Shown: positions 1,767 through 64,000, counted from the first letter of the stretch. The stretch: 64,000 bases of DNA from Chlorokybus atmophyticus (GCA_009103225.1 RHPI01003389.1:787162-851161); one strand, 5' to 3'. The notes: generated by a model not told the origin, from the letters alone. Program-made: numbers and translations.

Positions 1767-8940
<7,174 letters not shown>

Positions 8941-20703: not shown

Positions 20704-20790
20704 CCACACCCACACCCACACCCACACCCACACCCACACCCACACCCACACCCACACCCACACCCACGCACGCACGCACGCACGCATGCA
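20704..20790. repeat. (CACACC)n followed by (CACG)n microsatellite
   Basis: About ten perfect cacacc units followed by cacg units in intergenic DNA. Confidence 0.95.
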
Positions 20791-20859
20791 CGCTGTTATA
20801 AGGCACAAACATGCATGCGTGTGCACGTTTCAACCATGCACATACATGATCACGCATGT

Positions 20860-34611: not shown

Positions 34612-34889
34612 CTTGTGCGTAGGGCGCCTGGCCAGTACTCGTTGAAGGGGCTCTCCCCCTCATTGTATGGAAAAGGNNNNNNNNNNNNNNNNNNNNNNNN
34701 NNGGGGGAGGGGGCCGTGTGTGTGCATGGTGCTAAGATGTGTAGCGAGGCCTGTGGTCACCCTCTTCATCCTTGATGCTGAGCTGCAACTTCCTCCGCAT
34801 GGTACTGCACCTTGGTGCTTCCACTGTAAGTCATTTGGGTAATAAATGAGTGTGCCAAGCCGACTAGCAAGTGAGCGAGCAATTCTACA
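34612..34889 (+). mobile_element. Diverged solo-LTR fragment related to the LTR of the nested Gypsy element at 54516-54807
   Basis: Collinear shared blocks: cttgtgcgt(a/g)ggg(c/t)gcct, gtt(g/c)aaggggctctccc, gtag(c/a)gagg...ctgcacc, gccaagccg..agcaagt.ag. Ends in ...ACA. Contains a short N gap. Confidence 0.7.
34677..34702. other. Assembly gap (N run)
   Basis: Run of N flanked by purine/G-rich sequence. Confidence 0.99.
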
Positions 34890-44400: not shown

Positions 44401-47148
44401 GCAGCACTGCAGGTAGGGTGCTCTGCCCTTCTCATGCTCTTTCTCTCGCACATGCCCGCACGTATACACGTACACACACATGCACACACATGCACAGGCG
44501 CTTTGGTACATGTGTGAGTGTGGTTGTAGGCGAGCGCACACATGCACACACTCTTGCACACCTCAGCATGTACGAGGATGTGAGCGCACACACGCGCAAG
44601 CACGAGCACACAATTTTTACACGCTACTGCACACAGGCACTGGAATCGCAGCACAGCGACGTAACAGCACAACTTACAGACGCGCATGAGCAGCTGGTCA
44701 GCAGGATCGCGCAGATAAATGAGGCATGGGAGGCCGTCGTTCGGTTGCAAACAAAGGAAGAGGACTGGCGTGCAGAGAAACAGGCGTTGGAGCGCACTCT
44801 GCGGGAGGAGAGGGCGCGATGTGCTGAAATTGAAAATGATGCAGCAAGTCTTTGCAAACAGTTGGCTGAGGCTGAGATATCGCAAACCAGATTGAAGGCT
44901 AAGCTTGTGGAGACTGCGGCTGGGCACAAGGTAGGTCTTCACATCTGTTGGAGTTGAGACAACTGCAACGTTGTTGGATGTTTCCCAACACTGCAATGCT
45001 GGAATGCAGGCTGCATGTGAAGCAGCGGATTTAACAACAGCCAAGTGTGAACAGCAGGCACGCACGATCTGCAACCTTCAGAGAGAGGTGGGGTTGTAGA
45101 TGGGATGCGGATGGCAACTCCTTCATGCTGCAAGTGTAAACAGCTCTTGTCCGTCCACTACAGGTGGAGGATGCTAACAGACAATCCAACCAGCTAAACA
45201 GTGACCTCACACAGGCGCAAGTTGCAAGAGAGGTACGACGCACTGCTCGATGAAGCATTGCTGGAGTTTTGCCCAGCAAGCTTGAGAGTGCTCAACTGTC
45301 TGGCTGCGCAGGTTGCATTGAGTGCAGAAGAGGCTGCCCTCGCCTCGCTTGCAGAGAAGGGGGCAGAGCACGTGAGCATGTGCAGCAAACTGCAGGGTGA
45401 CATCTGCCACAAAGCCGAGCAGCTGGCAGACCTGCAGCGCGAGGTAGGTTGTGCAACGCAACCACGCATCCCAATCCCTTTTCCCTGGGTATACAAACAT
45501 TGCGAACATGCTTGTTTGTTGCAGTTGTGCGAAGTTGGTGCAGCCAAAGAGAGCGTGGAAGCCCAGCTGGCGCTGGCGCGCGCAGACTATGGACGCTTGG
45601 CTGCGCAAGTGGACTTTCTCTCTGGACAGCTTCAGCAGGCAAGCAAGCTGGCAACAACCTGTTGTGGACACATGAAACACTTCCTTCATGTCCTGATGTT
45701 GCGTACATTGCAGGAGAAGCGTGCTGGTGAGGCCGCTTCAGCGAAGATTAGAAGTCTTGCTAAGGAACTCGACGTGGCACACGCAAGGTAGTATGGTAGT
45801 ATGCATGATCAACATGAGGTTGCTTGTGTCGGCAGTTGTTGTGCCATGTGTTGACTGTCTCACTCTTCCCCCACAGTACCAGGTGCGCGGAGGACACGCT
45901 GCTGGAGGCGTCGGCACGCGTGCAAGCGAGTGCACGTGAAGCAGCGATGATGAGGGAGGAGTGCGCACAACTGCGAAGCAGAGTTGAGAAAGACAAGGTG
46001 AGGCTTGCTTTGCGTGTGGTCCCAGTAGGCGTGTTGGCAGGCACGCATTGTTGACATTGCATGGCTGGCTACATACCTCCATCACGCCTACCGTCCTGCA
46101 TCCCAAGTCTTGTCTTGTGTTGCAGGTGCAAGTCATTGAGATGGAGCAGCTGTTGCAGGCTTCCAACACTGCAAAGGTCTGCTGCAAAGTGACTTGCCTC
46201 ACTCTCGGTCACCCGTTTAAGACGAGCATTGATGATGGGATGGGGTCTGACTCCAAGCAATGGCATACACAGGTTGAGTTGCAGAACAGACTCGATGAGG
46301 GCCTGAGGTCGCTCTCGGAGGAGCATGAGCGCTGCGCTCATCTTGCTGCGAGCAATAAGGACCTGGAAAAGAAGCTGATGCGCGCGAGAGGCGAAGCAGA
46401 CAACCTGCGCAGCGAGTTTGGCCAGGTATGGAAGCCATATGTGTGCGTGCGTGCGTGCGTGCACGCATGCGCGCGCGTATGTTTGTGCACACTTGTGTGT
46501 GATGGTGCGTGCATGCGTTTACTTGCTTTCATGCAGCCAGGACTGACAAACAACATTGGGTTCAGGTTCAGGAGCGACCCGTAGCATTGAGTCAACACAG
46601 CGGCAGGGATAATGCGCCCAAGAAGGAGAGGAAGGGTTCAGGCAAGATGACGCCGGTAAGCTTGCACTGTTACGATGCCCTACACATCCATGCGGTTGTT
46701 GCGTGTGGAGCCAAAGCGATGCGCGTACACAAAACTTGCAGTGGGCCTGTTTTGCAGACAAATCCAGTTGAGTACGTCGACCTCACGGCCAGCGACTCGG
46801 ACAGCAAAAAGAATAACGGCCGTGGGAAGGAGAATAAAACCAACCAGCGTAACAAGTTCAAGCAGTATTTTCCTGCCCTGGTCAAAGATGAAGGAGCTGA
46901 AGACAAGTGCCATGTTCGCGATGATTCGTCGGACAGCTCGTCACTGGGAGCAAAGCTGAACAGTTCCACAGGTATGCATTGCTACAACTGAGCTATATGC
47001 AATTTAGTGGCATGTGTAGTGGAATGACATAAGTGAGGCAACTGTGTTGTGTCGTTTTGCAGATGGCAAGTGCATGGGTGAGGCACGGCGACAACCCTTC
47101 TCCAACCTGCAAAATACAGCAACAACCGAGCGAGGGTATGGTGTATGA
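38411..47148 (+). CDS. KIF15: Kinesin-12 (KIF15/PAKRP-like) N-terminal motor with long coiled-coil tail, multi-exon
   Basis: Motor motifs: [11 protein letters not shown]-loop [13 protein letters not shown] (~38771-38810), switch I NAESSRSH (~40030-40055), switch II VDLAGSE (~40135-40155). [21 protein letters not shown] and [21 protein letters not shown] are kinesin-12-like. Coiled-coil exons continue to ~46.9 kb. The 3' end is uncertain (in-frame TGA at 47146-47148, but a further splice is possible). Confidence 0.9.
38961..39306. other. Assembly gap (N run) within a kinesin intron
   Basis: 346 N. The flanking exons join in phase 1 (TME-G-PES), so no exon appears to be missing. Confidence 0.97.
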
Positions 47149-47644: not shown

Positions 47645-48031
47645 AAGCACACCGTCCCGGTTGCCAAGAACTGCCTTGGTGCGTGAGGCACAATGTATGC
47701 TCTGGTGCGCTGCGCATGTCATTGCTGTGAGCTTGGCGATGGTGTGTTTGCTGCATCAGGTAGGACATAGCATCTCTGAGTTGCTTGTTCATTCACCTCA
47801 CTTAACAGTGTAACACATCATCCACTCATGCAAAGAACTGTGTATACAGCACCACCTATCGTAGTGGCTTGTTGACGCACAGTGTCACCCTCTTTGCTCA
47901 AGTGAGTGTGTCGCTTTCTGCATCAGATAGTGCAGACTGTATCCGGGGATACATCTCTGTGCATTCGTTATCACTGTCATGACATAGTGCGCACACAAGC
48001 ACTATTATGGTGAGTGGTAGCAGCATCAACA
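47645..48031 (+). repeat. Left terminal-repeat remnant (segments A + D) of the DNMT-Gypsy element
   Basis: 47645-47876 is about 92% identical by hand alignment to 62446-62674. It continues to GTGAGTGGTA...TCAACA at 48031; TCAACA is the inverse of the TGTTGA that opens the right repeat. Confidence 0.8.
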
Positions 48032-48087
48032 GACAGTAGAGCACAAACACTCTACCCCGCATACACTTTCACTTATAGACTAGCTGT

Positions 48088-49820
48088 ATGAGCAGGCCCA
48101 CCCCGTTCTCTCCAATAGACGAGGGTGACCTCAGCAGCCGGAGCCCAACCTCCAATCTCACCTACGAGCGGACTAGCGACGGGGGCAACGATCGCAGCAA
48201 CAGAGGCTCGCGTTCTGTCTCCGGCTTCACTCCATTTCGGCCTATTCCTCGCCATCGAGCTTCCCTACTATCATACGACAGCGACGACTATAAGATGGAG
48301 TCCTTCAGCTCAACCACATCCCTACGCTTCTTCGGACGTGCTGGCACCACCTCGCTGAACGAATTTATCATCAAATTCCATTCCAAAATGCGACGGCAAG
48401 CTCTGAAGAAGAAAGACTAGTTGAATCAGAATTCTTTCCACATTGGTACTCAGTACCCTGAAGCACACGATGTCTAGAAGTCTGTTGCTGAACTGCATCG
48501 AGTTAATGGCTATGGCGAGCTCGCCAGCACCATAGCATCTGTCCGTCAATGCAAAGTCCAGCAGCCGTCGCTCCACCTGCCACTCCAGCTGCAGTCATCG
48601 GCTTGTACATAGCTGCTATCGAGAGGGCAGAGGAGGAGGAGGAGCCTGAGTTGGTAATCGTCAACCTGACCCCTGCAGAGATTGAGACCAAAATGTCGCA
48701 CGGCGAGCTCAGATCCTGGACCGTTCTGCTGCTATCTTTGCAAAACAACGAGCTGCAGCCGTTGAGGTGGGCACGCCTCTACCTCTGCCAACACCTGGCT
48801 CTCGTGCGGGAAGCAGTGCTTTCACCCTCGAGTCAATTGCATTGCGTGCACCAGCCATTACTGTAAGTGCTGCCATCTCTGACTCTCCACTCATGGACTT
48901 ATACGCTGCACTTCGTCGCACCTTCCCACCTGAGACCTCCAGCAAAGTGGATGAGCTGAGACGGTCTCGACGCAAGCCCAACGAGGACCCTCTACGCCTG
49001 TACTCCAGACTGGAAGGGCTGTTGAAGGACACTGACTACAAGATCGTCAGATGAGGCTGCTGCAGTGGTGTATGTTAATGAGTTAAATGTGTTGAAGGTA
49101 TCACATGGGTGATGCTTGTATCCGGTCAGCTTGCCCTCCACACAGGAGTCCAGAATCGAAGGTATGGGCTGAGCACGTGAACTCCGGACTTAGCAAGACG
49201 GTCGAGCCAGGACGGAATCTGGACCAGATGCTGAGTGGAGCGTTGGAAGAAACCGCGTAGCTTTGTGGATACGTAAGCTTAGCAAGCGTGGCGTAGCTTG
49301 TTGGAAAGCTCTGGTTGTAAGCTAAACAGCGCAATTAAAAGCGCATAAAAAGGCTGAGTATTGTGCACGCGGTGCTTGCAAATGTAGACGTGTGTAGAAA
49401 CTGGCGGGGTATAAAACCCCTTGACTTGTATGGCATTAATAGCAGTAGCAGTCATGCTCTTGTGTTGATGTTGGCGTGTCACTTGCACGTGTGTATGTCA
49501 ACAAAATGCCACCCTAAGCGAGTCGACGCGCTTGACCCTGAGCTACAGCAGGCCCCTTGGCTACACGCTCAAGGAAGCCTTCGAGTCTGCACAAGCCATT
49601 GACAAGCGCTTGGTGTATGAGAAGGCAGTGCTGGACACCAACCGCAGTGCCACAATCACAATTTATAGCTAGCACAAGTATTGAGCCTCCTCGCCGCGAA
49701 TGTGGCCGGAACGCTCCACCAGCACGCGACAAAGGGCAACGGTCAGCTTATGCTGCTTTGCCTGCCCCTGTGCTGTGTCATCGCTTTGGACGGCATGGGC
49801 ACTACTAACAAGAGTGCACC
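48088..49820 (+). pseudogene. Retrotransposon gag pseudogene with CCHC zinc-knuckle remnant
   Basis: Motifs: SLRFFGRAGTTSLNEFIIKF; LRRSRRKPNEDPLRLYSRLEGLL; VVYVNKMPP; GYTLKEAFESAQAIDKRL; C-HR-F-GRHGHY*QEC knuckle at 49776-49818. Contains frameshifts and stops. Confidence 0.75.
49079..49490. mobile_element. 412-bp insertion into gag flanked by 11-bp direct repeats
   Basis: GTGTATGTTAA (49068-49078) and GTGTATGTCAA (49491-49501) flank the block. Removing it restores ...AAAVVYVNKMPP. Confidence 0.7.
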
Positions 49821-52357
49821 GAAGAGTACTCAACCCTGATCTGCGACTGCTGTCACAAGACGGGTCACTTGGAGTCAGTTTGCTGGCTTAAGTTCCCTGA
49901 GTTGATACCTGCCAACAGCTACAGCAAGAACTACTCTGGTGGCTACAACAGCAACAACGCTGGAGGCCACAACTCTGGTGACTACAACAGCAACAACACT
50001 GGAGGCCACAATGGCAACACCTCTGGTGGCTACCACACCGAAGGCCATAGCAATAACTACTACGCCAACGCTCGCACGGAAGAGCAAGGCTACAGGGGGG
50101 AAAATCGTCCTCCTCAGCGCAAGGGACTTGAAGAACATCCGCGCACTGCTGCTGTTGCCGCCAAGGCTCCAGCCAACCCGCCAATTGATGACCATATTGC
50201 TGCCTTTGTGGCGCGTATGGCACACTAGGAGGAAGACAAGGAGTAGGACTACCGCGCCTGCTACTCTGCCGGATGGGCACTGATGGCTCCGAAGCGCACA
50301 ACAGACACGAGCACTCCGTCACACATTTGACCATCCCGATGAGCACGAGGGGAAGCCGCAACATTGTCATCAGCTACCTCGTTTGAAGCCACTAGTGGTG
50401 CTGCATCAGCAGCAACATCCACACCGGCTACGACGTCGACTCCGTCACCGTCAGCAGCAACTACTCTAGTTGCACTAGGAGTGGGTACATCAGTGGGCAT
50501 CGTAACGCCAACACTGGTGAGCACAATGGCGACAGCCACTGCTGTTACCGACTCTGCACTAGTGGATCGCACCGGTCCCGCTTCAGCTGTAGGAGCATCT
50601 ATGTCAGCGAATGTCAAGACCACTCTTGCGCCCCTGACCGGCACTATCGCAACCACTGCCAGTGCCATCGTCGAGTCCGCTGCCACTGCAGCAACGCGTG
50701 CAGCTATGTGCCCGCCCTCGATGCCACTCAAGCTGTCGCGCGAGATAAGCAAGCTGAGCGCGTGTGGGAGACCAACATGCATGGAGCAGATCCCACTACC
50801 ACTGCTTTTGGGCGAAGAGGAGAGCGCACCACGCGCATTGCACGCAGTGATCGCTATTTCCCCCTACTTAAATATCACACCCTACCAGAGCAGACCTTGC
50901 AGCAACTGGAGGATGAAATCCTCTCTGGCTCGGCGCCTCCCATGCGAGACCGCGTCCTTGTGATCAGAACACCTGTTGTGCTAGAGATGGCCCTGCAGCT
51001 ATTTTAAACTCTGCATGACAACATGCAGACAGCGCCACGCCAGCCCGCACAAGTCCGTCACGAGCCTTTCGAGCCAAGTCCGCTGAATACGTATCAAGAC
51101 CTGCAACCCAACATGCAGCTGACATGCCTTTGGGTACCGACGAAGCACCGTGGAACTTCACTACTCCTCGGCTTCACGAGCGCTACGCCGCTACAGAACA
51201 AGCGTTCACCTGGCGACAGGACCAAACTGCAGCCATCAACGCACGAGCGCAAGCCCTTGCCGCTCGTGCTTCCGTTCTTCAACCAACAAGCGCTGGCCCA
51301 TTGTCCAGCACGATACCTCTCCGTCGACACCGACATTGACCAAGTGAGGGCGCTGGCCCAACAAATTCGAGGGGTGACCGCCCTGTTGCGACCCGCCTTG
51401 GTGGAAGAGATTGCCTAACGATCAACGAGATCCAAGGAGAGGCTACCTTACACCATAAAAGTGTACGCAACGGGATGAAACAAGCCTAGTTGAAGAACAG
51501 CAAGTTCGCACTGCCCTGTTGCGACAAGCAAGCATGCTACATTAACAAGAAGGCATCGGCCTGACACAGATGATGGGGATGCAAGAGGGTGGCACTGCAG
51601 CGCGAGCGAAACTAGTAACTTGGCTAGTCACCAATCACCCCGCAGTTCTTTGTTCGCGTTTGGCACCAGATTGTCATGGCTGGACGCCTTCCTTCGCTCG
51701 CTACGGCAAGCCTATGACGAGGTGGCCTCGGCAGTCACTGACACCTTAGAAAGAGCTCAAGAGGCCACACTGAGGTTGCCAGGAGTGGAAGCAGCGCGAC
51801 AACACAGACGCATCTGCTTTTTTATGAGCAGCATGTCCAACAGAGATCTACCTCATTGTGCGTGCATGAGCAACTGTGCAGGAAGTGGGGGTGATCGATG
51901 GCACATGGGCTGCTTACATGGCCGCGATCTGAAGGGTTCCCACCATTACCCACGACACAAAAGCGCCGCTCCAGCGGGCAGTGTATCTTTAGCCCATGCC
52001 TCGGAACCATTGCTGGGATGATGTGGTCAACAATCCAATAGCTATATGGAAGGTACACTGTTCAGGGAAGCGGCTCATACTGTACGCTGGACTTATGTGG
52101 AAGAACAGCCTGCACGGGAAGCAAGCTTAAAAACAGGTCCCCCAGGGTTTCCCCCACAGCCACTTGCCACGCCGCCAGGTGTGACCCCGGTCACACAGAG
52201 GCGCAATCCCCCTGCGCCACAACCAGGGCAGCCATAGGCAGCACCGCCAGCACCCAGGCCGCAGCGAGTATACCAACAGCCAAAACCAGGACGGTTCGGG
52301 CCACGCCGCGGACAAGGAGATTCTCAAGACCCAGCCGGTCGAGGGGCGCTTGCCGCA

Positions 52358-52900
52358 GTGCGCTCGACACCATCAGAGGAGTCTGCAGCAGCAGTCACCC
52401 CACACAGACGCTACCGACGGTTCAAGCGTCTGCGCATCAACGCCAATGCAGCCATGATCGCCAACAAAGGCAAGCATATCACCATCGACAGTCGAACACC
52501 CAAGTGCGTACTGCTGGACTCTGGAGTCCAGCCTGTCATTGAACGTTACCTCGTACGCGACCTCGGCACCACCAGCGCTGAGCTGATGCCCTGCCTATAC
52601 GTGCTCGACACAGCAATCGGCAGCCGCGACAAGGTGATTGGCATCACCAAGCAGGCCCTCTGCATTCGCTTGACAGGGTTGGACCCTTTCCACAGCACCG
52701 AGATCATACAGGAGTGTGTGGTCACCGACGCGGGATCTTTTCACGTGCTGCTGAGACAGGATATCAACTTTCCTGCTGGCATGGGGCTTAACTGGTGGAC
52801 AGAGAAGGCATGGTTTCATCCCCATTGAGATGAGGAGGATGGAGAGGTTCAGGGATACATGCCTATCGAGCTGGTGGCTTGTACTCGCTCTCACCAAAGG
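52358..52900 (+). pseudogene. Retroviral-type aspartic protease domain
   Basis: CVLLDSGVQPVI (D-S-G) and downstream SFHVLLRQD (DxLLG-like). Same reading frame as the DNMT. Confidence 0.7.
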
Positions 52901-53188
52901 TCAGCTGCAACAGCCACCTACAGGTTGGCTTTGGCAACCATTGACAGGTCAGCGGCGGTAGTTACCCACAACCTAGACCACGACGCTCCTATCCCATGCA
53001 ATGAGTCCCAGGAGGATGCCACCAAAGAAGTGGCCCAACAGCAACCATCTGAACGCCGTTGGCACGTACAAGTGGTCGCACATCTACTACTGACTAGACC
53101 ACAACTCACTGCACGATTCCCTCGCTACAAGGACCAAGCTGCGGTCCAGGAGCAATATCAAGTGGCCATTGAAGTAGTGTAGTTCTAC

Positions 53189-53851
53189 GTGTCTCGCCGA
53201 CAACAAGGCATCACTGTGTTGGAACTGTTTAAAGGTATAGGTAGTGGCCTCGCCGCTGTCCTCAACATCGGCGCGACGGTCACCAAGTACCTATACTGCA
53301 ACCATGATCCACACGCACGGATTGCCCTCAACCACCACTTGCGTCGCCTACACGAGCGCTACCCGCAGCAGCTGCCACTATCAGCACTGCACGGCAGTCT
53401 GAAGGCACTGCCACAGGACATCCGTTGGATCACTGAGGATCACCTCCTAGCGGTGGGCAACATCGACCTGCTAATAGCAGGATGGGAATGTTTAAGACAC
53501 TACAGAGCAGGCAGAGGCCAAGGACTCTTTGATCCTTGATTGCAACTGTTGTAAGAGCTGATGCGCGTCATCAAATTCCTGTAGAGCCACCCGACTTCCA
53601 GGCCTCTGGGGTATATCATCAAATACGTGCACTCCGAGAACGATAAGCGTCATCACGTGACCGACAGCTGTCAACATGTTTGCTTCTTGCTGAGTCATCC
53701 TCTTAAAATCAACATAGTGCATTATGAATCCCGTGCTCAACGTGTCCGCGCCAAATGGACCACCCTAACTACAGTGAAGGATTTCTTCGCTACTGTCACG
53801 TCCACGGGGCAGGCAAAGTCATTCTCTGTCCCTTACCTATGTGGTAAGTAA
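53189..53851 (+). pseudogene. Retrotransposon-encoded C5 DNA cytosine methyltransferase domain (degenerate, 3'-truncated)
   Basis: Motif I TVLELFKGIGSG (FxGxG, 53228-53242); motif IV IDLLIAGWEC with Cys at 53489-53491; motif V RAGRGQGLFDP*; motif VI remnant GYIIKYV (canonical ENV); motif VIII ESRAQRVRAKWT. All lie in one frame, with in-frame stops at 53537, 53552 and 53582. Confidence 0.88.
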
Positions 53852-54024
53852 GATGAGACCAAGTGGGGACCCACACTACGCAAGCGTGTGTAGTGCTTGT
53901 GGGTGTGCTCTCATGTAGGTCTGCTCTAGAGCATGTGCGGCCTTGAGCATGATGAACTACACAAGGCATGATGGCAAGCACAGGGCTGATCATAACCGAT
54001 GAGACATCATGTGATGTACGGAGA

Positions 54025-54205
54025 CATATGTGTGCATATGTCCGCATGTGTATGCATGTGTTTGCATATGTGTGCACATGTATGCATATGAGTGCATATG
54101 CGTGCATGAGAGGTATGTATTAGATGTATGCATGTATATGCATGCATGCGCATATGTATGCATATGCGCGCATATGTATGCATAAGGATGCATATGTATG
54201 CATGA
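54025..54205. repeat. (CATATG/TGCA/TG)-type alternating purine-pyrimidine microsatellite
   Basis: Continuous catatgtgtgcatatg...tatgcatg tract. Confidence 0.85.
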
Positions 54206-54216
54206 GTATGATGTTT

Positions 54217-54375
54217 TAGGCTGATGTGACCAGCCAAGGACGTTCACAACGTCCAAGGATGATGTGTGTGATGTCCTAGGCTGAGGTGACCAGCCTAGGG
54301 ACGTTTACAATGTCCGAGGCTGATGTGTGATCAGTCTTGGGCGTTGAAAGAGGTCCAAGGGCTGATGTGGCAGCC
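54217..54375 (+). repeat. 60-bp tandem repeat (~2.5 copies)
   Basis: taggctga(t/g)gtgaccagcc..ggacgtt.acaa.gtcc.agg.tgatgtgtg units start at 54217 and 54277, with a degenerate third copy. Confidence 0.85.
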
Positions 54376-54515
54376 CTAGACATGAGTTGTGGTCAACGCA
54401 GCCATGACAAGGCATGTAGCCTTGGATTTGGATGTTCTAGGTCGGAGCAGCAAAGAGAGGGTATATGAACGGCCTCAACATGTGTTGAGGCAGCTCAGCC
54501 TGTGCATACTCGACT

Positions 54516-57500
54516 CTTGTGCGTGGGGTGCCTAGTTTAGTTGTTCAAGGGGCTCTCCCTCTCATCCCATGTGGGGTGTGATGTCCGTGGCAGCTTTGCA
54601 CATGTGTGTGAGGTGTGCTTGAGTGTGTGAGTGTGTGGGAGTTGAGTAGAGAGGTTGGTGTCATCCTCTCCTTCCTTGGTGCGGTGCTGTGACTTTCTCT
54701 GCGAGGTGCTGCACCAGTGACGCTGGTAGGGCTTCCAGTAGTAAGTCCTTGTGCTTGTGCTTAAGTTTGCCAAGCCGCCCAGCAAGTAAGTGAGTGGTAT
54801 CGTTACATTGGACTCGGAGCTTGGATTCCAAGCCTTGCATGCTTGCCCATCAGCTCATGCACTTGCTGCACCGTACGTGCGTTGCATTCTTTGCTTGCAC
54901 GCACTACATGGCAGGGTTTTGAGCTGATTGTGCATGCTAGTTGGTGCGTCCAGCTGCATGCACACTTGCATGCATGGTGTGGGTCGTTCTACACGCTAAT
55001 TTGAGCATTTGTTGTGTGTTCTTGCTGCACATACACAGCATTACACACGCATTGGCTTGTTGCTGCACCAGCTGCGCGTGTGCGCGCATGTGCGCGCATG
55101 TGCGCTTGAGTGCATCTGATACAGGGACCTCACCTTGTGGTGTTGGCCCTAACCTTTGTGGCAATGGCTGAGCAAGAGCATACAGCAAGAGAGGAGGTAT
55201 CTTGGGGCAATGATGTTGCTAAGACCACCCGACAGCTTACCATTTTGGTTGCCACGTTGTGTGAGCAGGTAACAGAATTACAGCAACAACACGAGGCCAA
55301 CATAGCTCAATGGCAACGGTCAAGTGACATCGTTGACTGTGCAATCCCAAGTAAGGGACATGTTGGTGCATCTGTTGATGCAAGTGTACAAAACCACCGA
55401 GAGCGTAAGCGTAGCCGTGAAGCACAGCTCTGTGAAGCTGAAGCTGATGCTGCTCGGGGCCATGCTCTCATGTATGAGGGACATGAAGAGAGCAAGAAGC
55501 CATGTATACAACAGGGATTGCCAATGGCTAGCTGCTCTGTGGACGTTGATACGCAATGTGCTTTCAGTGACTTGATGTCATGCCTTCCCTAACCATGCAA
55601 TGTCGCTGTGTGGGAGAACGAGTTGGGTGTACAGGTAGATACTCAATTCATGCAGCACGACTGTGCGGGCAAGTGTGTCTTGCTCAATGCACATGTTGAC
55701 GAGTTGTCAAACATGCTCAAGCACTATGTGGATTGCAAGAGCAAGAGTGCGCACAACACAAGTGCATGCGTGGTTGTACCCAAGCGTCCTGGGTTGTGGA
55801 CCCGCTTTGTTAAAGGCATGCAGGTCCTGGGAGAGGTCAAGCTAGGTAAGGGGCAGATGCGTGTGTTGTATGACCCCCCTGCCATCCATGAGGTAAATAC
55901 TCTGGACTTGACTTGGTTGTTCAAGGCTTCTGTTGCGCATGTGCCGTGCATCCTGATGATGAACACGGCGACACCTGTCAACTTTGTGAGTGAATTTCTT
56001 GTGCGACGCATTCGTGTCAGCAAGTGTGATGAAACGGTTGTTGCCTTGACTAAGCTTGAGATCCCCGTGCGGGGAGTTGTATGCTTGTCTGTGCGTGTGC
56101 AAGGCTATCATGCTCACCTCAAGTTCTTGGTCATCCCAGTAGCGGTGCTCGGCGTGGATGTGATTGTTGGCAGCCACTGGGAGCAAGCATGTGGCTTGCG
56201 CACAGACGCGGACACAAAACTTTGCAGTGTATGCAAAGGTTGAGGTCGTGTGACCTTGCATGCAAATGGGCACAATGTTGCGCCCACTGTTAGCTCTGTT
56301 GATGATGCATCAAGTACAGATGTCTTATGTTCTTTGTTGAGTGCCATGCAGGTGAAGAGGGCTGTTCGCCATGGAGCTCAACCTCTTCTAGTGCTCGTCC
56401 GGCCAGTCGGCAACGACGACACTTTCACCTCAGTTGGTGAGACCGGTGGCAAGCCATCAAATACGGCCCTTGAAGGTCTGTTGTCTGAAGTTTCTGATGT
56501 GTTTCAAGCTGAACTGCCTGCATTGCCACTTGAGAGGGACGTCTGGCATACGATCCCTCTAGAGTCTGGTGCGCAGCCTCCGTTCAGACTGTGTGTATAG
56601 GCTGAGTCCAGCTGAGTATGCGGACAAGGAGGGGCTGATCAAGGCCTTGCTTGAGAAGGGATTGATTGAGCCAAGTAGCTCTCCTTTCAGAGCACCCATT
56701 CTTTTCGTACTTAAGAAGGACGGCAGGCTACGCATGTGCGTAGACTATAGGGCCTTGAACAAGCTGACCATCAAGAACAGGTATCCGCTGCCAAGGATAG
56801 ATGATTTGATTGATCAACTGAGCGGTGCCTCAGTGTTCAGCTCCTTGGATCTCATCAGTGGGTACCATCAATTCGGATCACACCGGAAGATGTGCCCAAG
56901 ACAGCGATCAGAACGCCTGTGGGACACTTTCAATACAAAGTGCTGCCTTTTGGTCTGACGAATGCGCCAGCCACCTTTCAAGCTATGATGAACCGTGTGT
57001 TTCACAAGCTGATCGGGAAGACAGTGCTTGTATTTTGATGATATACTTGTATTCAACAAGAATGCTAACATGCACGTCGCGCAAGTGCGCGAGGTGCTGG
57101 AAACGCTGCGTGCGCACCGGTTTTCTATGCTTACATGCCCAAGTGCGAGTTTGGCAAGAAGGAACTAGAGTTCCTCGGGCACACTGTGAGCAAGGAGGGC
57201 GTGCGCCCTGACCCAAGGAAGGTTGCCAAGGTCAAGGATTGGCCTAGTCCTAAGAATGTGCACGAGCTGCGCGCATGCTTAGACTTGAGCAACTACTTCC
57301 GCAAGTACATTCTTGGTTACTCATCGCGTGTTGCCCCTCTCACTACTCTGTTGCGTGACAAGGTCGTGTGGAGGTGGTCACATAGGCAGCAAGAAGCCTT
57401 TTGCGTCCATCAAAGAGACTTTGGTGATAGCGAGTGTGTTGCAGCTGCCGAACTTCACCAAGCCCTTTGAGGTAAACTGTGATGCGTCTGTTGAAGGCAC

Positions 57501-59100
57501 TGGTGTTGTGTTGCTCCAGAGTGGGCACCCCCTTGCTTATGGTAGGAAGAAGTTCTCTCCTGCTGAGAGAAACTATACAACAACTGAGCAAGAGTTGTTG
57601 GGGGTAGTCCATGCGCTACCAGAGTGGCGTTGCTATCTAGAGGGGGTGGAAGGCCGGTTTAGTGTGATCACGGACCACAACCCCCTTGTTTTCTTTCAGA
57701 CCCAACCAACCTTGTCGAGAAGACAAGCGAGGTGGGCTGAGTTCTTGTCCAGATTCAACTTTACTTGGGTTTACTGACCAGGGAGAGTGAATGTGGCAGA
57801 CCCTTTGAGCCGTTCGCCATTGCTGTTGGCAGTGACAACACGTGCACGTGCACGAAGCCAAGGGTGGGCACAAGCAAGTGATGCTAGTGCCAGTACTTTC
57901 GAGTTGCCATCTGTGCATGAGCAAGCTGTCAATGAGACACCACCGTGGCAACAGAGACCAGCGAGATGCCAACTGAGCTCGAGAGAGCAGACAGTGAAGC
58001 ACCGTTGGTAGTGCACGAGCCAAGTGGGGAGGACCTAATGGCCGTTGATGTGAAAGACATCAAACAGCGTTTACTTTGCTAGTGCTTATGCACATGGGTT
58101 GACACATGGGTTGTTGAGTTGCTGAAGCAGGCAGACGACAAGATCACTTGTCGCAAGGGCCTCTGGTACTGTGAGGGCAAGTTGATATTGCCAAATGCAC
58201 TCGGCTTGAGGCAAGAGTGTCTGTTTGAGGCACACAATGCCGTGTACAGTGGGCACATGGGAATGGCAAAGACCATCAAGCAGCTGCAGAGACAGTATTA
58301 GTGGCCGAGCTTGAGTGCTGATGCATCTAATTATGTCCGTGTTGTGACACTTGTCAAAGAGACAAGGCCTCGCACAGGAAGCCAGCAGGGTTGCTGAAGC
58401 CCTTGGCTATTCCCAACTCTCAATGGGAGAGTGTGAGCATGGATCTGATCACAGATCTACTCGTGACAAAGAAGGGACACAGTGCTGTCATTGTCTTTGT
58501 TGATCGCTTGATTAAGATGGTCAGATTTGACCCCTGTGCACAGACATGATGCGCAAGAGTTTGCGTTTGTCTTTGTGAACTCGGTGTTCAGATCACACGG
58601 TGTACCCAAAGAGTTGGTGTCTGACCGTGACCCCAAGTTTGTGAGCCATGTTTGGCAGGCTGTATGCCGGTACTTGGGGATTAAGCAGAGCTTGAGCACT
58701 ACTTACCATCCACAGAATGACGGACAGACGGAGCGCGTCAATCAGGTGTTGGAAGATGTGCTACGCCACTACACGTCACCCAGGTTCGATCATTGAGATG
58801 TGTACCTGCCACTTGCTGAGTTCGCTGTGAACAATGCATAGCATGAGTCGCTAAGAAGCACTCTTTTCTATCTAAACTACGGTCGCCATGTGTTGACACC
58901 CATGTCTCTGAATGTCGAGCCATTCAGCAAAGTGCCGATGGCTAGAGGCTTCACAGAGAGCATGCATGCCTCATTGGCACATGCAAAAGACTGCTTGAGA
59001 GCAGCACAAGACAGGCAAAAGATGTATGCCAACAGGCAACGTAGGCCTGGAGATGAGCTCCAAGTTGGAGATCAAGTGTTGTTGAGATCAAAAGATCATT
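54516..59100 (+). mobile_element. Nested decayed Ty3/Gypsy retrotransposon, 3'-truncated
   Basis: LTR-like segment ends GTGAGTGGTATCGTTACA at 54807, followed by the PBS-like TTGGACTCGGAGC. Gag/protease remnants at 55110-56243. [29 protein letters not shown]...LDLISGYHQ plus a frameshifted YFDD (~57030). RNase H FEVNCDAS...TTTEQELL...TDH (57460-57780). Integrase H-x6-H zinc motif, SMDLI and VSDRDPKF...HPQNDGQTERVN (58230-58750). The true 5' LTR start may lie further upstream (to ~53860). Confidence 0.9.
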
Positions 59101-59154
59101 CAACTCAGCTCTATGTGTGCATTGCATGAGTTCATGCAGTGCCAGCATAGATTG

Positions 59155-59495
59155 TGCTGTAGATATTAGCCTTGGGGTAGATACAATTGGCTAGGAGTAT
59201 TCTCCTGTATGGGGCTGCCTGGGGTATATAGGCCGCGGGACAGCCGCCAGAGGTCAGACTCGACTAGACGCTTAGACTAAATAGTCAGTAAATGCACTTA
59301 TGAGAGTTGAGGTCTCCCTGTTGCTGTGTGCGACTTGTACCTTTGTGCAAACTTTGTGTGTGCATGCCTACATGCAGTAGAGAGGGTCTGCATATGTGTG
59401 AGCAGCTATGTGATTGTTAGCTGCTGCATAGCTACACTGTGTGTGTAGAGTCTCAGCTCAGCACTTTGCTCTATACACAGCACTGATTGACAGCA
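59155..59495. mobile_element. Non-coding LTR-like segment at the junction between the nested and host elements
   Basis: Non-coding block starting TG with a TATA-like gtatata; it matches neither recognised LTR. Boundaries and TSD are unresolved. Confidence 0.35.
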
Positions 59496-59509
59496 GTCTT
59501 TGCCAACAA

Positions 59510-60030
59510 TTGCGCGGCCACTCAGCGAGTTACTGAGGAGGGACACAGAATTCCCAGTGGACGGAGGCACAGCAAGAGGCCTTCATGAAGCTAAAGCTCC
59601 AACTCACCACAGCTCTTAACCTTCAGCAACCTGACTACGACATGTCATTCATCCTGCACACAGATTGGAGCAAGCTCGGCGTGAGAGCAGTGCTCGTACA
59701 GCACGATGACAACAAGAAGGAGCGTAGTGTCGAATGCAAGCCGCAGCAACAACAGCGCTGAGGCCAACTACAGCAGCTACGAGGGGAGTGTCTCGCCGCA
59801 GTTTGGGCCATCTCCTCCTTCCGGCACTTCCGGTTTGGACGGCAATTCCAACCGATCACCGACCACCAACCACCGAATTGGCTGATGACCAACCAGCACC
59901 TGACAGGCAAGCTGGCACGGCGGGCACTACTGCTGCAGGAGTACAACTTCGAGGTGGAGCATCGGGTTGGCCTGTCCAACCAGGACGCAGACGGCCTTCG
60001 TCGCAACCCCCACCTTAGCACCAACGATAC
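59510..60030 (+). pseudogene. RT connection domain and RNase H of the DNMT-Gypsy element
   Basis: IARPLSELLRRDTEF/QWTEAQQEAFMKLK; FILHTDWSKLGVRAVLVQ; GECLAAVWAISSFRHF; ITDHQP; KLARRALLLQEYNFEVEHRVGLSNQDADGL. Confidence 0.9.
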
Positions 60031-60429
60031 GACAGGAGCCCGACACAAGTTGGGTCCTGCAGCCGCATCTCCAGGTATAGTGACCAGGATCGCTGTCGCT
60101 GCGCTACGTTCAGGACGCAAGACCCAGGCCATTGAGGCAGCAGCAGACAAGGACGTGCCATCTCTCGGGTCCATCGTTACCATCACAGACCCCTTATCAA
60201 GCGCTCGCCGCCGACCTTGAGGTGGACGATGAGGAGCTGGCACCCACCGACACACACACGACAGGACATCTAGCTGGACAAGCCATCCCTCGCACTTCCG
60301 CCCAGACAATTTCCAGCAGGCATGAGCGCGCGCAAGAAGGACCGCACCGGTCAAGGCACTCAGCGCTATCGCTGGGCCAATGACACGCTGTATCGACAGA
60401 TACAGAATGAGGACAAGGAGGTCCAAACA

Positions 60430-61540
60430 CCAGCTGCGCGAGAAGGCATCATCGCTGCCCTTCACACCGAGCTCGGACACTTCGGTGTTAAGCGCACGGC
60501 CAGTCTGGTCAAGGCTCAGTACTGGTGGTATAGGGTGCACAAACAGGTGCGCGAGTACGTCAGCGACTGCCAGCAGTGTGATATGGTCCGCGCGAGCCTA
60601 AACACGCGCAACGCCACCTTGCATCCCCTCCCCATCTCGGGACTGTTTTACCGCTGGGGACTGGACATCTTCGGGGACTTCGCCCTCAGCACGAGGCAAC
60701 CGCTACATCCTCGTCATGATCGAGCACTTCTCCAAGTGGGTGGAGCTTGTGCCCTTGCCCGACAAGGGCAGCGAGGGAGTAGCCCAAGCTTTCCTCTCCC
60801 ATGTACTCGGACGCTTCGGCAGTTGTGCTGAAGTCATCACCGACCAAGGTATGGAGTTCAGAGGAGCCTTTGACAAGCTCATGGACAGATGCTTCATTGA
60901 CCATTACCGTACTTCACACGACCATCCACAAGCCAATGGTCTTGCTGAGCATACCATGTAGACCATCAAGAAGGCTTTGCGCAAGTACGTCCTCGACTAC
61001 GAGAAGAGCACATGGGATGACCACCTCCCATGGGTAGCACTTGGGTTCCGGCCGTCCAAGCAGGCAGCACTACGGGAGTACAGCCCATATGCTGTTTGGA
61101 AGGCAGCCATTGCTCCCTTTCCGCGCACAGCAGAAGGTCGAAAGAGTGGTGGACAATCTCGACAACCCCGACGAGATGCTATATGATCTAACAGTGCGCG
61201 GCGCGCTGTTCGAGCACACTGTCCCCATGGTCTTCCACAACTTGCGCATCGCTCAGCACCGCGACACGCTTCGCTGCAAGCGTGTGCGCAACGGTTTCTA
61301 CAAGGAGCGGGAACGCCGCTTCCAGCCAGGAGACTTTGTCTACCGTATGGCGACCACACACGACACCCTCGACACCTCCGTTGGGCGCGCTGTTTGTAAG
61401 GTATTGAAGGTGTATCCCACAGGGGTACTGGACCTGCTGGGACAACAAGGAGAGCGCATGATGGACAACATGGTAAATTGCGCGCCCTATCATCTTCCCC
61501 ACGTTGCTGGCCTCGACAAGATCCAACACCCGCGACCGCT
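60430..61540 (+). pseudogene. DDE integrase of the DNMT-Gypsy element
   Basis: HHCC domain LHTELGHFGVKRT...YWW...CQQC; catalytic WGLDIFG, ITDQGMEF and HPQANGLAE; downstream LFGRQPLLP. Contains frameshifts. Confidence 0.9.
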
Positions 61541-61553
61541 GCGAAGCACCCAC

Positions 61554-61688
61554 TGCGAGAAATGTGGCTATGCCGACAACGACCTGGTGATGCTGTTATG
61601 TGAAGGCTGCAACCAAGGCATGCACTGTTACTGCCTTGACCCTCCATTTGACAAGGTGCCACTGTGGGAGTATTGGTGCGATGACTGC
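61554..61688 (+). CDS. PHD finger (C4-H-C3) at the C-terminus of the retrotransposon pol remnant
   Basis: CEKCGYADNDLVMLLCEGCNQGMHCYCLDPPFDKVPLWEYWCDDC retains all eight Zn ligands and the L.PP...VP...W.C signature, within ORF 61041-61718. Confidence 0.92.
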
Positions 61689-61760
61689 CGCATCAACGGT
61701 CCCCCACACAGTCGGTAGGAGCCGAGTCCTGGAGCAGGAGGCTACCCCAGAACCTCAAGC

Positions 61761-61797
61761 AGGGGGGGGGGGGGGGGGGGNGGGGGGGGGGGGGGGG
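61761..61797 (+). promoter_or_regulatory. Polypurine tract (poly-G) preceding the 3' LTR
   Basis: A followed by ~36 G (one N), two bases before TGTTGA at 61800. Confidence 0.7.
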
Positions 61798-61799
61798 CT

Positions 61800-62898
61800 T
61801 GTTGATTGTATGTACTACAGCACAGTAGGTACCGTAAGGAGGAGAGCGTCACAAGCTCTACTACTGATCAGATCCTCACATAGGTTCATCCATGAGCCTA
61901 TGCCTATGTCTGGGGGGTTAACTTTGTTTGTGTTGCTCTAATGCTGCGCGTAGCACCAGCATGCCCACGGCATGGGCACTCGTCTGCAGTGTGCTCAAGA
62001 CGGCGTGACCCTCGAGTATGGCAGGCACGAAAGCTGTCATGCCAAATACCCTCGCATGCCAGTCCTCCTCGAGCATGCCTACATCCAGCCCCAAGCTTGG
62101 GCTACCAACATGAAGACCGCGCGCGACTCAGCCTACTGCTAGCTATTTTGTACTTCATATAACATGTAGCTAGGGCTACTCTATAGACCTCTCTGTAGGA
62201 ACCGCGCGTAGCTGATCAGTTGGGAATCCGTTATCAGCTCATGTGCTATATCAAGTCTTAGGGGACTTCCGTAGTAGCATACGGCCTCAATGTGACTGTT
62301 GGCTTAGTGCCCGCGTGGCATTGCACAATCATAATTTTACATGTATAAGTAGGAAGTCATGTCACTAGACTTGCTGGTGACACTGTGAGTGAGTACTAAG
62401 GGTAAAGACACTGACTTTAGGAGCTTGTGAAGCGACTTGAACTAAAAGCACACCGTCCCGGTTGCCAAAAATTACCTTACTGCGTGAGACACAGTGTATG
62501 CTCTGGTGCGCTGCGCTTGTCATTGCTGTGAGCTTGGCGAGGGTGTGTTTGCTGCATCAGTCACAACATAGCATCTCTGAGTTGCTTGTTTATTCACCTC
62601 ACTTGACAGTGTAACACATCCACTCATGCAAAGAACTGTGTATACAGCACTACCTATCGTAGTGGCTTGTTGACTGTGTATACTACAGCACAGTAGGTAC
62701 AGTAAGGAGGAGAGCGTCACCAGCTCTATTACTGATCAGATCCTCACATAGGTTTATCCCTGAGCCTATGCCTATGTCTGGTTGGTTGTCTTTGTTTGTG
62801 TTGCTCTAATGCTGCACGTAGCACCAGCATGCCCACGGCATGGGCACTCGTCTGCAGTGTGTCCGAGACGGCGTGACCCTCGACCATGGCAGGCACGA
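61800..62898 (+). repeat. Right terminal-repeat complex B1-C-A2-B2
   Basis: 61800-62030 (B1) is repeated at 62668-62898 (B2). 62446-62674 (A2) repeats 47645-47876 (A1). Confidence 0.9.
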
Positions 62899-64000
62899 CA
62901 GGAAAGAGGCGCAAGTATGATGATCATTATAGACCATGATCAAGTGCCCTTGGCCATGGAGACATGTAGCTGATTGGAAGAGCCCTTTACGGAGCTGATT
63001 TAGATAATGCGAAACACACTAGTGACGTGGGTTGGAGGGCAGGTTGTGCGCTTAACGACGCACTTGCGCTTCCGCACACACATGCCACCTCAACACTAAC
63101 ATGCAGTGGCCATGGCCATTGGCCAATGCGACATTGGCAACTCAGTACGATGCATTCGCTACTTAACTTCATGTAGCGCCGCGCCAACCTTGTTGGAAGT
63201 TGTGGCCTCGCGGTCCCGTGGCCTGTCGTATAATACCGTGGACTCCGTTGTTGTGCCTGATGTAGTACATAAACTCTGCGCGTGTGGCCCGCCCGTCGAG
63301 TAACGACCCGCCCCGTGTATGTGCTCGCATGCACCGCATGCATGCACGCTCCCACGAGAAAGCTCGTGGGAGCGTGCATGCATGTGCATGCGTGCGCGCG
63401 TGTGTGTGAGTGTGCATGCGCTCGCATCACCAACTATCAATATGCAGGTGCGCGTGTGTGCACCTTCAAGTTTGTCCCCTGAGCGGAGACGGTTGCCCCC
63501 GCTTGCGGTATGCTGTTCAGTTCAGCTGGCTCATTCTCCACGCAAGCCACGTATACCCACAACTGCGTGCATCTTGTACTCCCAACATGTCATATGAAGC
63601 AGCAGACATCACACACAGGATGAACAATAGGTTCTTGTTATCTACAGATTACACAACAGACCTGTAAGCTACGCAGGGAGCGCAAGCGCTTACCTAACTC
63701 TAATCAGTGAGGCCCCTGCTTAGAAGCTATACTCTCTCATGCTAATGCTGCTTTATATCTACCAACATCGCTTGCTGCTGGGCGAGAGAGAAGAGGACAG
63801 ACAAGAGAGAGAGAGAGAGTCTGTCACACACACACGTGGGTGTGTGCTTTTGTGCGCGCGCGCACGTGCAGCACGCCGCTGCATGTCCACCTAACCTGCG
63901 CAGTGGTGATCACTACAGGTGATCTGCTTCGACCTTTAATCGGATGCGCGCGTCGGAGGCCACTCGTGGCCACAAAGGCAACGCGTACCCGTGTACGCGT

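Follow-up and report, generated by a model that had tools for sequence, protein, structure and literature searches.

Members of a Ty3/gypsy-type retrotransposon family that is present across the green lineage, from chlorophyte algae to a liverwort, carry a PHD finger at the integrase C-terminus, and nearly all relatives that retain the reverse transcriptase (RT) also carry a DNMT3-like DNA methyltransferase (DNMT). The pairing of DNMT and PHD finger is family-wide, yet not obligatory. One old copy, interrupted, partly deleted and dead, occupies positions 47645–62901 of the window, i.e. of the whole 64,000-nucleotide stretch of Chlorokybus atmophyticus DNA that was analysed.

A PHD finger ends the integrase

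The PHD finger of the window copy is encoded within the following open reading frame:

61041–61718, + strand: open 225-codon frame encoding the integrase C-terminal helices, an SH3-like barrel (aa 99–149) and the PHD finger
61554–61688, + strand: PHD finger of the C4HC3 type (PF00628, family conservation, PDB and structure matches)

The codon of the first ligand, C1, lies at 61554–61556 and that of the last, C8, at 61686–61688 on the + strand of the window, such that 61554–61688 covers exactly the distance from C1 to C8. The ligands follow each other in the canonical C4HC3 order with the spacing C-x2-C-x11-C-x2-C-x4-H-x2-C-x14-C-x2-C. The Pfam search that had been proposed as a check in the initial annotation gave a full-length match of the 225 aa frame to PF00628 (E = 9.6e-7, 29.2 bits at a cut-off of 24, profile positions 1–47 of 47). 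It is joined to an integrase, whose H2C2 zinc finger, DDE core and SH3-like C-terminal domain lie upstream. The frame ends in HCEKCGYADNDLVMLLCEGCNQGMHCYCLDPPFDKVPLWEYWCDDCRINGPPHSR, and its stop codon, which is that of the pol, is found 30 nt past the PHD finger, followed by a poly-G tract and then by the terminal repeat. The PHD finger is thus genuine and closes a Ty3/gypsy-type pol, just as had been annotated. In an AlphaFold2 model based on an 18-sequence alignment, pLDDT values of 82–90 were obtained for the PHD finger (aa 171–220) and of 83–92 for the SH3-like barrel, and the predicted structure adopts the PHD fold.

Distribution and conservation of the family

To collect relatives we carried out an exhaustive HMMER search of the window frame against 1.84 billion protein cluster representatives. 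The number of matches was 1953 with a threshold of E ≤ 1e-3; it fell to 441 with E ≤ 1e-10 and to 46 with E ≤ 1e-30. In the best 150 matches, query residues of about 13–220, i.e. the integrase C-terminal region together with the PHD finger, were aligned in one stretch. Such one-stretch alignment to 441 clusters at E ≤ 1e-10 places the fusion of PHD finger and integrase far beyond chance. Relatives were detected only by the exhaustive HMMER search; a word-indexed protein search with the PHD-bearing frame returned no matches. When a profile of the integrase C-terminus plus PHD finger was run against JGI metagenome contigs, at least 374 related loci were confirmed. Haematococcus lacustris, Scenedesmus sp. 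PABB004 (annotated as 'pol') and Chlamydomonas eustigma are the sources of the named members; further named relatives stem from Closterium and the liverwort Calypogeia fissa, and the remaining members from metagenomes and Logan assemblies. No relative exceeded 42% identity in any of the collections searched (protein clusters, metagenome loci).

For the best 150 relatives the consensus of the finger reads CExC..PD....MLLCDxC..G(W/Y/F)H..CL.PPL..VP.G.W.CP.C. The eight ligands are 97–100% conserved among these relatives, counted on representatives no two of which are more than 50% identical. Conservation of this degree at such low identity is indicative of long-term purifying selection in the family.

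Pairing of the PHD finger with a DNMT3-like methyltransferase

Mapping about 80 loci with probes revealed two domain orders. Most loci follow the order DNMT-RT-RNase H-integrase-PHD (type 1) and a minority the order RT-RNase H-DNMT-integrase-PHD (type 2); at either DNMT position the PHD finger stays on the integrase. To count the pairing we considered the 24 metagenome loci with at least 5.2 kb of sequence upstream of the integrase C-terminus. A DNMT was present in 21 of them (17 of type 1, 2 of type 2 and 2 with the RT deleted), while the other three are 5'-truncated copies that lack the RT as well. In intact relatives one and the same protein holds the Pfam domains RVT_1, RT_RNaseH, DNA_methylase, Integrase_H2C2, rve and PHD. 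In P0134, for example, CCCH, DNMT, RT, RNase H, integrase and PHD are found within one protein of 2710 residues. Loci collected with the DNMT instead of the PHD finger as seed also end in integrase-PHD. The Calypogeia fissa locus L083 has the order protease-DNMT-RT-RNase H-integrase-PHD, and the same holds for L085, L086 and L088. The initial annotation had asked for a count of this kind and had named, as the result that would refute its reading, that DNMT and PHD finger never occur together in full-length copies. Both were found within single polyproteins as well as within single copies bounded by repeats.

Exceptions occur in both directions. L087 has kept the DNMT, and its integrase stops exactly where the PHD finger would start, such that the finger is dispensable at least in this lineage. 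The P0118 polyprotein has a PHD finger and no DNMT. Two further proteins that appear to lack the DNMT, P0002 and P0004, are cut at the N-terminus.

The DNMT domain of intact relatives scored above the cut-off of Pfam PF00145. In the PDB it matched DNMT3A, DNMT3B and DNMT3C only, at 5e-8, and the methyltransferase of the family is therefore DNMT3-like. Its motifs read ELFGGxxAGLE (motif I), GWECQDLSPAG (motif IV, mostly with EC in place of PC), ENxxxQ (motif VI), LDAAxFGSxAHRLRNxWTN (motif VIII) and ERERALGY...GRCMD (motifs IX and X).

Relation of the PHD finger to histone readers

To characterize the finger we searched PDB sequences both with the window copy and with a profile of 45 family sequences. 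The top PHD fingers were those of KDM5/Lid (PHD1), ATXR5, BAZ2A/B, WSTF, KMT2C/D and CHD4, with DPF2/3, KAT6A/B, BHC80, AIRE, ORC1b and UHRF1/2 also ranking high. The highest profile scores for single domains were obtained for KDM5/Lid PHD1, ATXR5 and BAZ2A/B. H3K4me3 readers of the ING, BPTF or TAF3 type were absent from the best 60 PDB matches. Upon structural comparison with Foldseek, the modelled finger fitted best onto BAZ2A in complex with an H3K4 peptide that carries no modification (TM scores of 0.81–0.85, rmsd of 1.4–1.9 Å), and the modelled barrel plus PHD finger matched Tudor-PHD cassettes, namely those of UHRF1, PHF1 and MTF2.

Judged by sequence, the nearest characterised relatives belong to the class that binds the unmodified H3 tail and not to the H3K4me3 readers. 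The best matches BAZ2A/B, KDM5A/B PHD1, UHRF1/2, ATXR5 and BHC80 share with the family the consensus MLLCDxC..G(W/Y/F)H..CL.PPL..VP.G.W.CP.C, whereas they are host chromatin regulators with 30–40% identity to the transposon finger. The label 'BAZ/UHRF1-like' of the initial annotation agrees with these PDB matches and with the BAZ2A superposition; the solved complexes hold unmodified H3 tails. Readers of the unmodified H3 tail lack the aromatic cage of ING2 and BPTF and have acidic residues ahead of the first strand; the family consensus has a G two residues before the ligand His and P, D or E ahead of MLLCD, columns that may correspond to these positions. Acylated H3K14 is the ligand of DPF3 and KAT6 among the nearest solved fingers, and H3R2 that of UHRF1. 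Since the nearest solved fingers differ in their ligand, the specificity of a PHD finger is not reliably readable from its sequence.

A parallel to the host DNMT3 system, in which an ADD domain of DNMT3A or DNMT3L reads H3K4me0 next to a DNMT3 catalytic domain, had also been drawn. It holds insofar as a finger resembling H3K4me0 readers accompanies a DNMT3-like domain, and it fails insofar as the finger is not of the ADD type: neither ADD nor DNMT3 or ATRX chains occurred among the 55 and 110 PDB matches. Host ADD and transposon PHD finger have no detectable homology, and in type 1 the transposon reader is carried by the integrase, apart from the DNMT. Since the finger is a canonical PHD and no ADD chain was matched, the likeness to the host coupling of H3K4me0 reading and DNMT3 is a functional analogy and not one of shared ancestry.

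Proposed role of the PHD finger

We think it on balance probable that the PHD finger of active members would tether the integrase to chromatin, a role that the chromodomain plays in chromoviruses. Located immediately C-terminal to the SH3-like DNA-binding domain of the integrase, and assumed to stay on the integrase after cleavage of the polyprotein, it would bind the N-terminal tail of H3 unmethylated at K4. In this way the intasome would be steered to H3K4me0 nucleosomes and would avoid active promoters, which are marked by H3K4me3. Methylation of the element's DNA by the DNMT3-like domain would either follow integration or occur independently of it. Tethering of the integrase to H3K4me0 chromatin is by itself plausible. 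Chromovirus integrases carry chromodomains that direct integration (cited in PMC6673714 and 10.64898/2026.05.21.726589). For the PHD-bearing element Gypsy-7a_cRei intergenic insertions are 2.6 times more frequent than expected (PMC9940879), a bias that could be due to selection instead of targeting. De novo CG methylation by retrotransposon DNMTs is described in PMC5890265. The copy in the window is capable of neither tethering nor methylation.

In host cells reading of H3K4me0 is coupled to DNMT3 activity, and the PHD finger may correspondingly serve the DNMT. ADD-like reading of H3K4me0 would then recruit or activate the DNMT3-like domain, such that methylation and not integration is targeted. 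The co-occurrence of both domains in almost all full-length relatives would fit such a role, and since integrase-PHD immediately follows the DNMT in type 2, a protein composed of DNMT, integrase and PHD finger can be imagined for this type. In type 1, however, which includes the window copy and the liverwort copy, RT, RNase H and integrase lie between DNMT and PHD finger. Moreover, the finger keeps its position on the integrase wherever the DNMT is located, it is a canonical PHD and not an ADD, and PHD elements devoid of a DNMT exist (P0118 and, from its published domain list, Gypsy-7a_cRei). Because type 1 separates DNMT and PHD finger widely within the pol, and because the finger is never found off the integrase, we regard a role in the service of the DNMT as unlikely.

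A different ligand would also change the picture. The finger may read H3R2, acylation of H3K14, H3.1-specific residues in the manner of ATXR5, a host chromatin protein or the proteins of the element itself, in which case it might function in nuclear import, assembly or evasion of silencing instead of site choice. The nearest solved PHD fingers do vary in their ligand (UHRF1, DPF3, KAT6A/B, ATXR5, KMT2C/D, CHD4). The top profile scores, however, go to KDM5/Lid PHD1, ATXR5 and BAZ2A/B, the best structural fit of the predicted model is to the complex of BAZ2A with unmodified H3, and the integrase C-terminus is the site where known targeting modules of LTR elements reside. A ligand other than the unmodified H3K4 tail hence appears quite improbable, and tethering to H3K4me0 chromatin is the role that we prefer.

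The copy in the window

The features of the element are, in addition to the open frame given above:

47645–47876, + strand: split direct repeat A1, 5' terminus (91.8% identical to 62446–62674)
49740–49901, + strand: gag remnant with two CCHC zinc knuckles at 49776–49805 and 49842–49883 (tblastx, type-1 relatives)
52358–52843, + strand: retropepsin-like protease remnant (tblastx matches of 52424–52540 and 52697–52843 to type-1 relatives)
53045–53920, + strand: N-terminal two-thirds, approximately, of a DNMT3-like cytosine methyltransferase, pseudogene (phmmer, tblastn, motif alignment)
53219–53248, + strand: DNMT motif I (alignment to relatives, as for the next three)
53477–53500, + strand: DNMT motif IV, with ECQ changed to ECL
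53615–53644, + strand: remnant of DNMT motif VI
53729–53767, + strand: DNMT motif VIII
53921–59491, + strand: foreign segment replacing the C-terminal part of the DNMT and the RT (Pfam, identity to family)
59492–60178, + strand: RT-connection and RNase H, with one in-frame stop (Pfam RT_RNaseH_2 2.5e-21, RT_RNaseH 1e-20)
60238–61096, + strand: integrase, with H2C2 finger at 60463–60597 and DDE core at 60655–60958 (Integrase_H2C2 3.7e-15, rve)
61762–61795, + strand: poly-G tract separating the stop codon of the pol from B1; position 61781 is N (read from sequence)
61796–62033, + strand: split direct repeat B1 (92% identical to 62664–62901)
62446–62674, + strand: split direct repeat A2 (repeat comparison with A1)
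62664–62901, + strand: split direct repeat B2, 3' terminus (repeat comparison with B1)

The copy is of type 1, and the preserved order is gag, protease, N-terminal part of the DNMT, RNase H, integrase and PHD finger. In tblastx comparisons with type-1 relatives the gag is collinear with L019, L023, L036, L052 and L076, and the DNMT (53183–53845) is collinear with type-1 loci. The protease, recognizable from the motifs VLLDSGV (52508–52531) and LLRQDINFPAGMGLNW (52748–52795), lies just upstream of the DNMT and in the same reading frame; the spacing between the two is 777 nt in the window and 746 nt in L019. Among the 150 relatives with integrase-PHD, phmmer matched the DNMT-like stretch 53045–53920 (METHYLTRANSFERASE) in 32, with P0127 (3e-42) in first place. 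The stretch in the window ends after motif VIII, lacks motifs IX and X and contains in-frame stops. Pfam run on the window detected neither the decayed DNMT nor the protease fragment, which were identified only via the relatives.

The foreign segment of about 5.6 kb comprises microsatellite-like sequence at about 53800–54300 and a fragment of an unrelated Ty3/gypsy element (protease 55608–56243, RT 56250–57200, RNase H 57313–57777, truncated integrase 58119–59129). Identity to the family is 23–31% for this fragment compared to 38–51% for the RNase H and integrase of the element itself, whose RNase H reaches 38–46% against relatives in tblastn. The repeat search of the window found no LTR pair for the foreign fragment. 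In the integrase of the element the catalytic residues lie within 60655–60681 (D), 60833–60865 (D) and 60929–60958 (E); frameshifts near 60690 and 61085 distribute the tblastn pieces over three reading frames.

The repeats are arranged as A1 ... B1-A2-B2 and bracket the whole element, the last 11 nt of A2 (GGCTTGTTGAC) overlapping the start of B2. A1 and A2 (91.8% identity) have diverged to the same degree as B1 and B2 (92.0%), as expected for one insertion event. Corresponding repeats were found in L019 (A1 1169–1475, B1 10709–10887, A2 10884–11190, B2 11192–11369), and in L029, L036, L039 and L045 B1..B2 follows right after the PHD finger. The poly-G tract 61762–61795 is possibly polypurine-tract-like. 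By eye, neither a primer-binding site after A1 nor a target-site duplication around 47645 and 62901 was seen. The window also contains an AAA-ATPase-like host exon with weak matches in plants and no close one; the host is green-lineage-like, and the window does not stem from an annotated proteome resembling that of K. nitens. Rfam and tRNA scans of the window found nothing.

The collinearity with type-1 relatives and the bracketing split repeats place the PHD finger and the DNMT remnant in one element, and reader and writer are in this respect combined as had been annotated. The further notion of a self-contained targeting and silencing module has to be abandoned for this copy. At least three frameshifts occur between RNase H and the PHD frame, stops interrupt DNMT and RNase H, the RT is absent and the DNMT is truncated; with a truncated, stop-containing DNMT pseudogene and no RT, it is not a working module.

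Our own first reading was that the DNMT piece stems from another copy. This suspicion arose because the first intact relatives were of type 2, while only about 150 codons separate RNase H and integrase finger in the window, and it was withdrawn once most of the about 80 loci turned out to carry the DNMT upstream of the RT, with which the block in the window is collinear. Still, DNMT and integrase are 5.6 kb apart with an unrelated gypsy fragment in between, RT and C-terminal DNMT part are missing, no intact frame joins the two, and the type-2 position of the DNMT between RNase H and integrase is empty. An accidental adjoining of two copies is nevertheless very unlikely, given that order and spacing of gag, protease and DNMT match type-1 relatives, that A1 pairs with A2 at the divergence at which B1 pairs with B2, and that every part lies on one strand in the expected order. 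Even if two copies had adjoined, the co-occurrence of DNMT and PHD finger at the level of the family stands.

State of the PHD finger in the window copy

The finger had been described as a perfect C4-H-C3 PHD. With regard to the eight ligands and their spacing this is correct, whereas three other residues of the finger that are invariant in the family are mutated: M stands in place of the aromatic residue ahead of the ligand His, and in P-x-G-x-W the G has become W and the W has become Y, none of which occurs at the respective position in any of 128 relatives. Across the frame, relatives show at least 90% conservation at 37 positions, of which 7 deviate in the window copy, including the Trp of P-x-G-x-W and a conserved Cys of the CAPCH motif.

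The initial annotation had also stressed that the ligands are intact despite decay elsewhere. They are, but at a divergence of about 4.1% per copy only 0.87 disruptive hits are expected in the eight ligand codons, and the probability of finding none is 0.42. Eight intact ligands are thus unremarkable and no sign of selection, and other invariant residues have been lost. That the finger is a chance Cys/His pattern or a captured host exon foreign to the transposon, for which nothing but the shortness of the domain speaks, is practically out of the question and was rejected in view of the significant Pfam match, the fact that finger and integrase align in one stretch across 441 clusters (E ≤ 1e-10) and the at least 374 confirmed loci.

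Comparison with known elements

In chromoviruses a histone-tail reader is likewise located at the extreme C-terminus of the integrase after an SH3-like domain, and the same tethering role is proposed. The present family differs by a PHD finger instead of the chromodomain, by the predicted ligand (the unmodified H3K4 tail versus H3K9me) and by its split-repeat ends. The Chromo family gave no match in any Pfam scan of the window and of intact relatives, and the PHD finger sits in that position. The pol follows the Ty3/gypsy order; the window copy has kept all of it (protease, RNase H, integrase) except the RT, and relatives have the full order. Instead of the two identical flanking LTRs of Ty3/gypsy elements, however, the window copy and L019 have split direct repeats. 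With rve and Integrase_H2C2 in place of the tyrosine recombinase of DIRS elements, the family is DIRS-like in repeat layout only.

KnitGypsy-Dnmt3 of Klebsormidium nitens is a Gypsy-type pol with a Dnmt3-like domain in the polyprotein (de Mendoza et al. 2018, PMC5890265). Its repeats are arranged as A-coding-B-A-B 'like a DIRS element', while its domains are Gypsy-type (PMC5890265, legend of Fig. 4c). Compared by description only, it shares the DNMT3-like domain within the pol and the repeat arrangement with the window element and its relatives. Text and supplements of PMC5890265, as far as accessible, make no mention of a PHD in KnitGypsy-Dnmt3. In contrast to KnitGypsy-Dnmt3, the family described here has two DNMT positions, and its members come from a liverwort as well as from chlorophytes (Haematococcus, Chlamydomonas eustigma, Scenedesmus). 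In later surveys of how DNMTs evolved, DNMT3s of retrotransposons are mentioned without PHDs.

REM1 of Chlamydomonas, said to have been described by Perez-Alegre in 2005, reportedly carries a PHD accessory domain. PHDs are common accessory domains in Chlamydomonas transposons and are suspected to limit harmful insertions (PMC9940879, PMC8557442, PMC6673714). REM1, Gypsy-7a_cRei and the Chlamys elements (PMC8557442) resemble the present family in that a PHD is part of a green-algal retrotransposon polyprotein. Gypsy-7a_cRei is active, and a figure legend places its PHD between RNase H and integrase, with no DNMT (PMC9940879); here the finger is C-terminal to the integrase and paired with a DNMT3-like domain. 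EpiLTRs/DAM-LTRs are LTR elements with chromodomains and adenine/cytosine methyltransferases (bioRxiv 10.64898/2026.05.21.726589). As in our family, a histone reader and a DNA methyltransferase are united in one unit, and in one clade the methyltransferase lies between RT and integrase. Theirs are DAM with or without a DNMT4-like enzyme plus chromodomains, while here a DNMT3-like enzyme is combined with a PHD finger.

Both components are thus of kinds already described, as Gypsy-DNMT3 elements and as PHD accessory domains of algal transposons. Our literature search found no paper describing the pairing of integrase-PHD and DNMT3, and based on this absence of mentions, the family-wide pairing with its two DNMT positions may be undescribed. 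It is possible, though on the doubtful side, that integrase-PHD and DNMT3-like domain constitute a conserved, coupled and so far undescribed reader-writer module from chlorophytes to liverworts, which would choose H3K4me0 sites and then methylate itself; it would be an independent equivalent of ADD-DNMT3, in which the DNMT moved and the PHD finger stayed.

The copy in the window is a dead relic and important only as a pointer to the family. As the family is abundant, with at least 374 metagenome loci in addition to genomic copies in Haematococcus, Chlamydomonas eustigma, Scenedesmus and the liverwort, intact copies for experiments exist. If the PHD finger tethers the integrase to H3K4me0 nucleosomes, it would represent a second, independent route of chromatin-guided integration beside the chromodomain. 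The tether would then share its polyprotein with a DNMT of the de novo type, forming a compact system for choosing a landing site and subsequently marking it.

Sequence surrounding the element

The window is rich in imperfect microsatellites and also contains stretches resembling exons, as well as several assembly gaps:

13700-15700, 20680-20800, 28000-32300, 53800-54300, 63100-63500: imperfect CA/CAC/CACG-type microsatellite arrays
5432-6418 (-): AAA-ATPase-like
24649-25254 (+): short-chain dehydrogenase-like, N-terminus
26313-26500 (+): short-chain dehydrogenase-like, C-terminus
28378-32092 (-): PPR-like repeats
42698-46584 (+): long coiled-coil protein
38961-39306, 34677-34702, 20873, 61781: N runs (assembly gaps)

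Owing to the abundant arrays, both strands show long but spurious ORFs rich in His/Thr/Cys/Ala. The five exon-like stretches look like host gene exons; for the AAA-ATPase-like one, a search of the protein collection returned only weak plant matches. The gap at 61781 is a lone N within a poly-G tract a short way 3' of the PHD.

Structure of the PHD-bearing element

The element is bounded by DIRS-like split direct repeats in an A-coding-B-A-B layout, and it encloses a fragment of an unrelated Ty3/gypsy lineage:

47645-47876: split direct repeat A1
61796-62033: split direct repeat B1
62446-62674: split direct repeat A2
62664-62901: split direct repeat B2
55608-59129 (+): second Ty3/gypsy lineage, with protease, RT, RNase H and truncated integrase
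61476-61499: NCAPCHLP motif, immediately upstream of the PHD linker

The 11 nt with which A ends are also those with which B begins (GGCTTGTTGAC). In the window, B1 and A2 are separated by a spacer of 412 nt (62034-62445), while at the related locus L019 B1 directly adjoins A2. The DIRS-like repeats are found here on an element with a DDE integrase.

The nested fragment carries numerous frameshifts, and no LTRs of its own were detectable in the window. The interval between gag and protease (49900-52400) is approximately 1.4 kb longer than in relatives and includes repetitive, coding-like, Thr/Ala/Leu-rich sequence (TTATTLEATTLV...), which may represent an expansion or an additional insertion.

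Variation of pol across the family

Among the related loci (L001-L089) and proteins (P0127, P0134), the DNMT3-like domain occupies two alternative sites in pol. In type 1 it lies upstream of RT; the window element is of this type, as are, among others, peat-moss-type metagenome contigs and the liverwort Calypogeia fissa. In type 2, examples of which come from Haematococcus, C. eustigma and Scenedesmus, the order is RNase H, DNMT3-like domain, integrase. The PHD is located at the integrase C-terminus in both types.

A variant of the family without PHD is found at locus L087 (947-12144), where two type-1 copies in tandem retain DNMT, RT, RNase H and integrase. Their pol ends in ...GDTCEEEP*, with the stop precisely at the expected PHD start.

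The NCAPCHLP motif is shared with the relatives, among which its Cys is 99% conserved; the window copy carries a C to Y change. The motif may give the C-terminal domain of the integrase a further site that binds metal or has a structural role.
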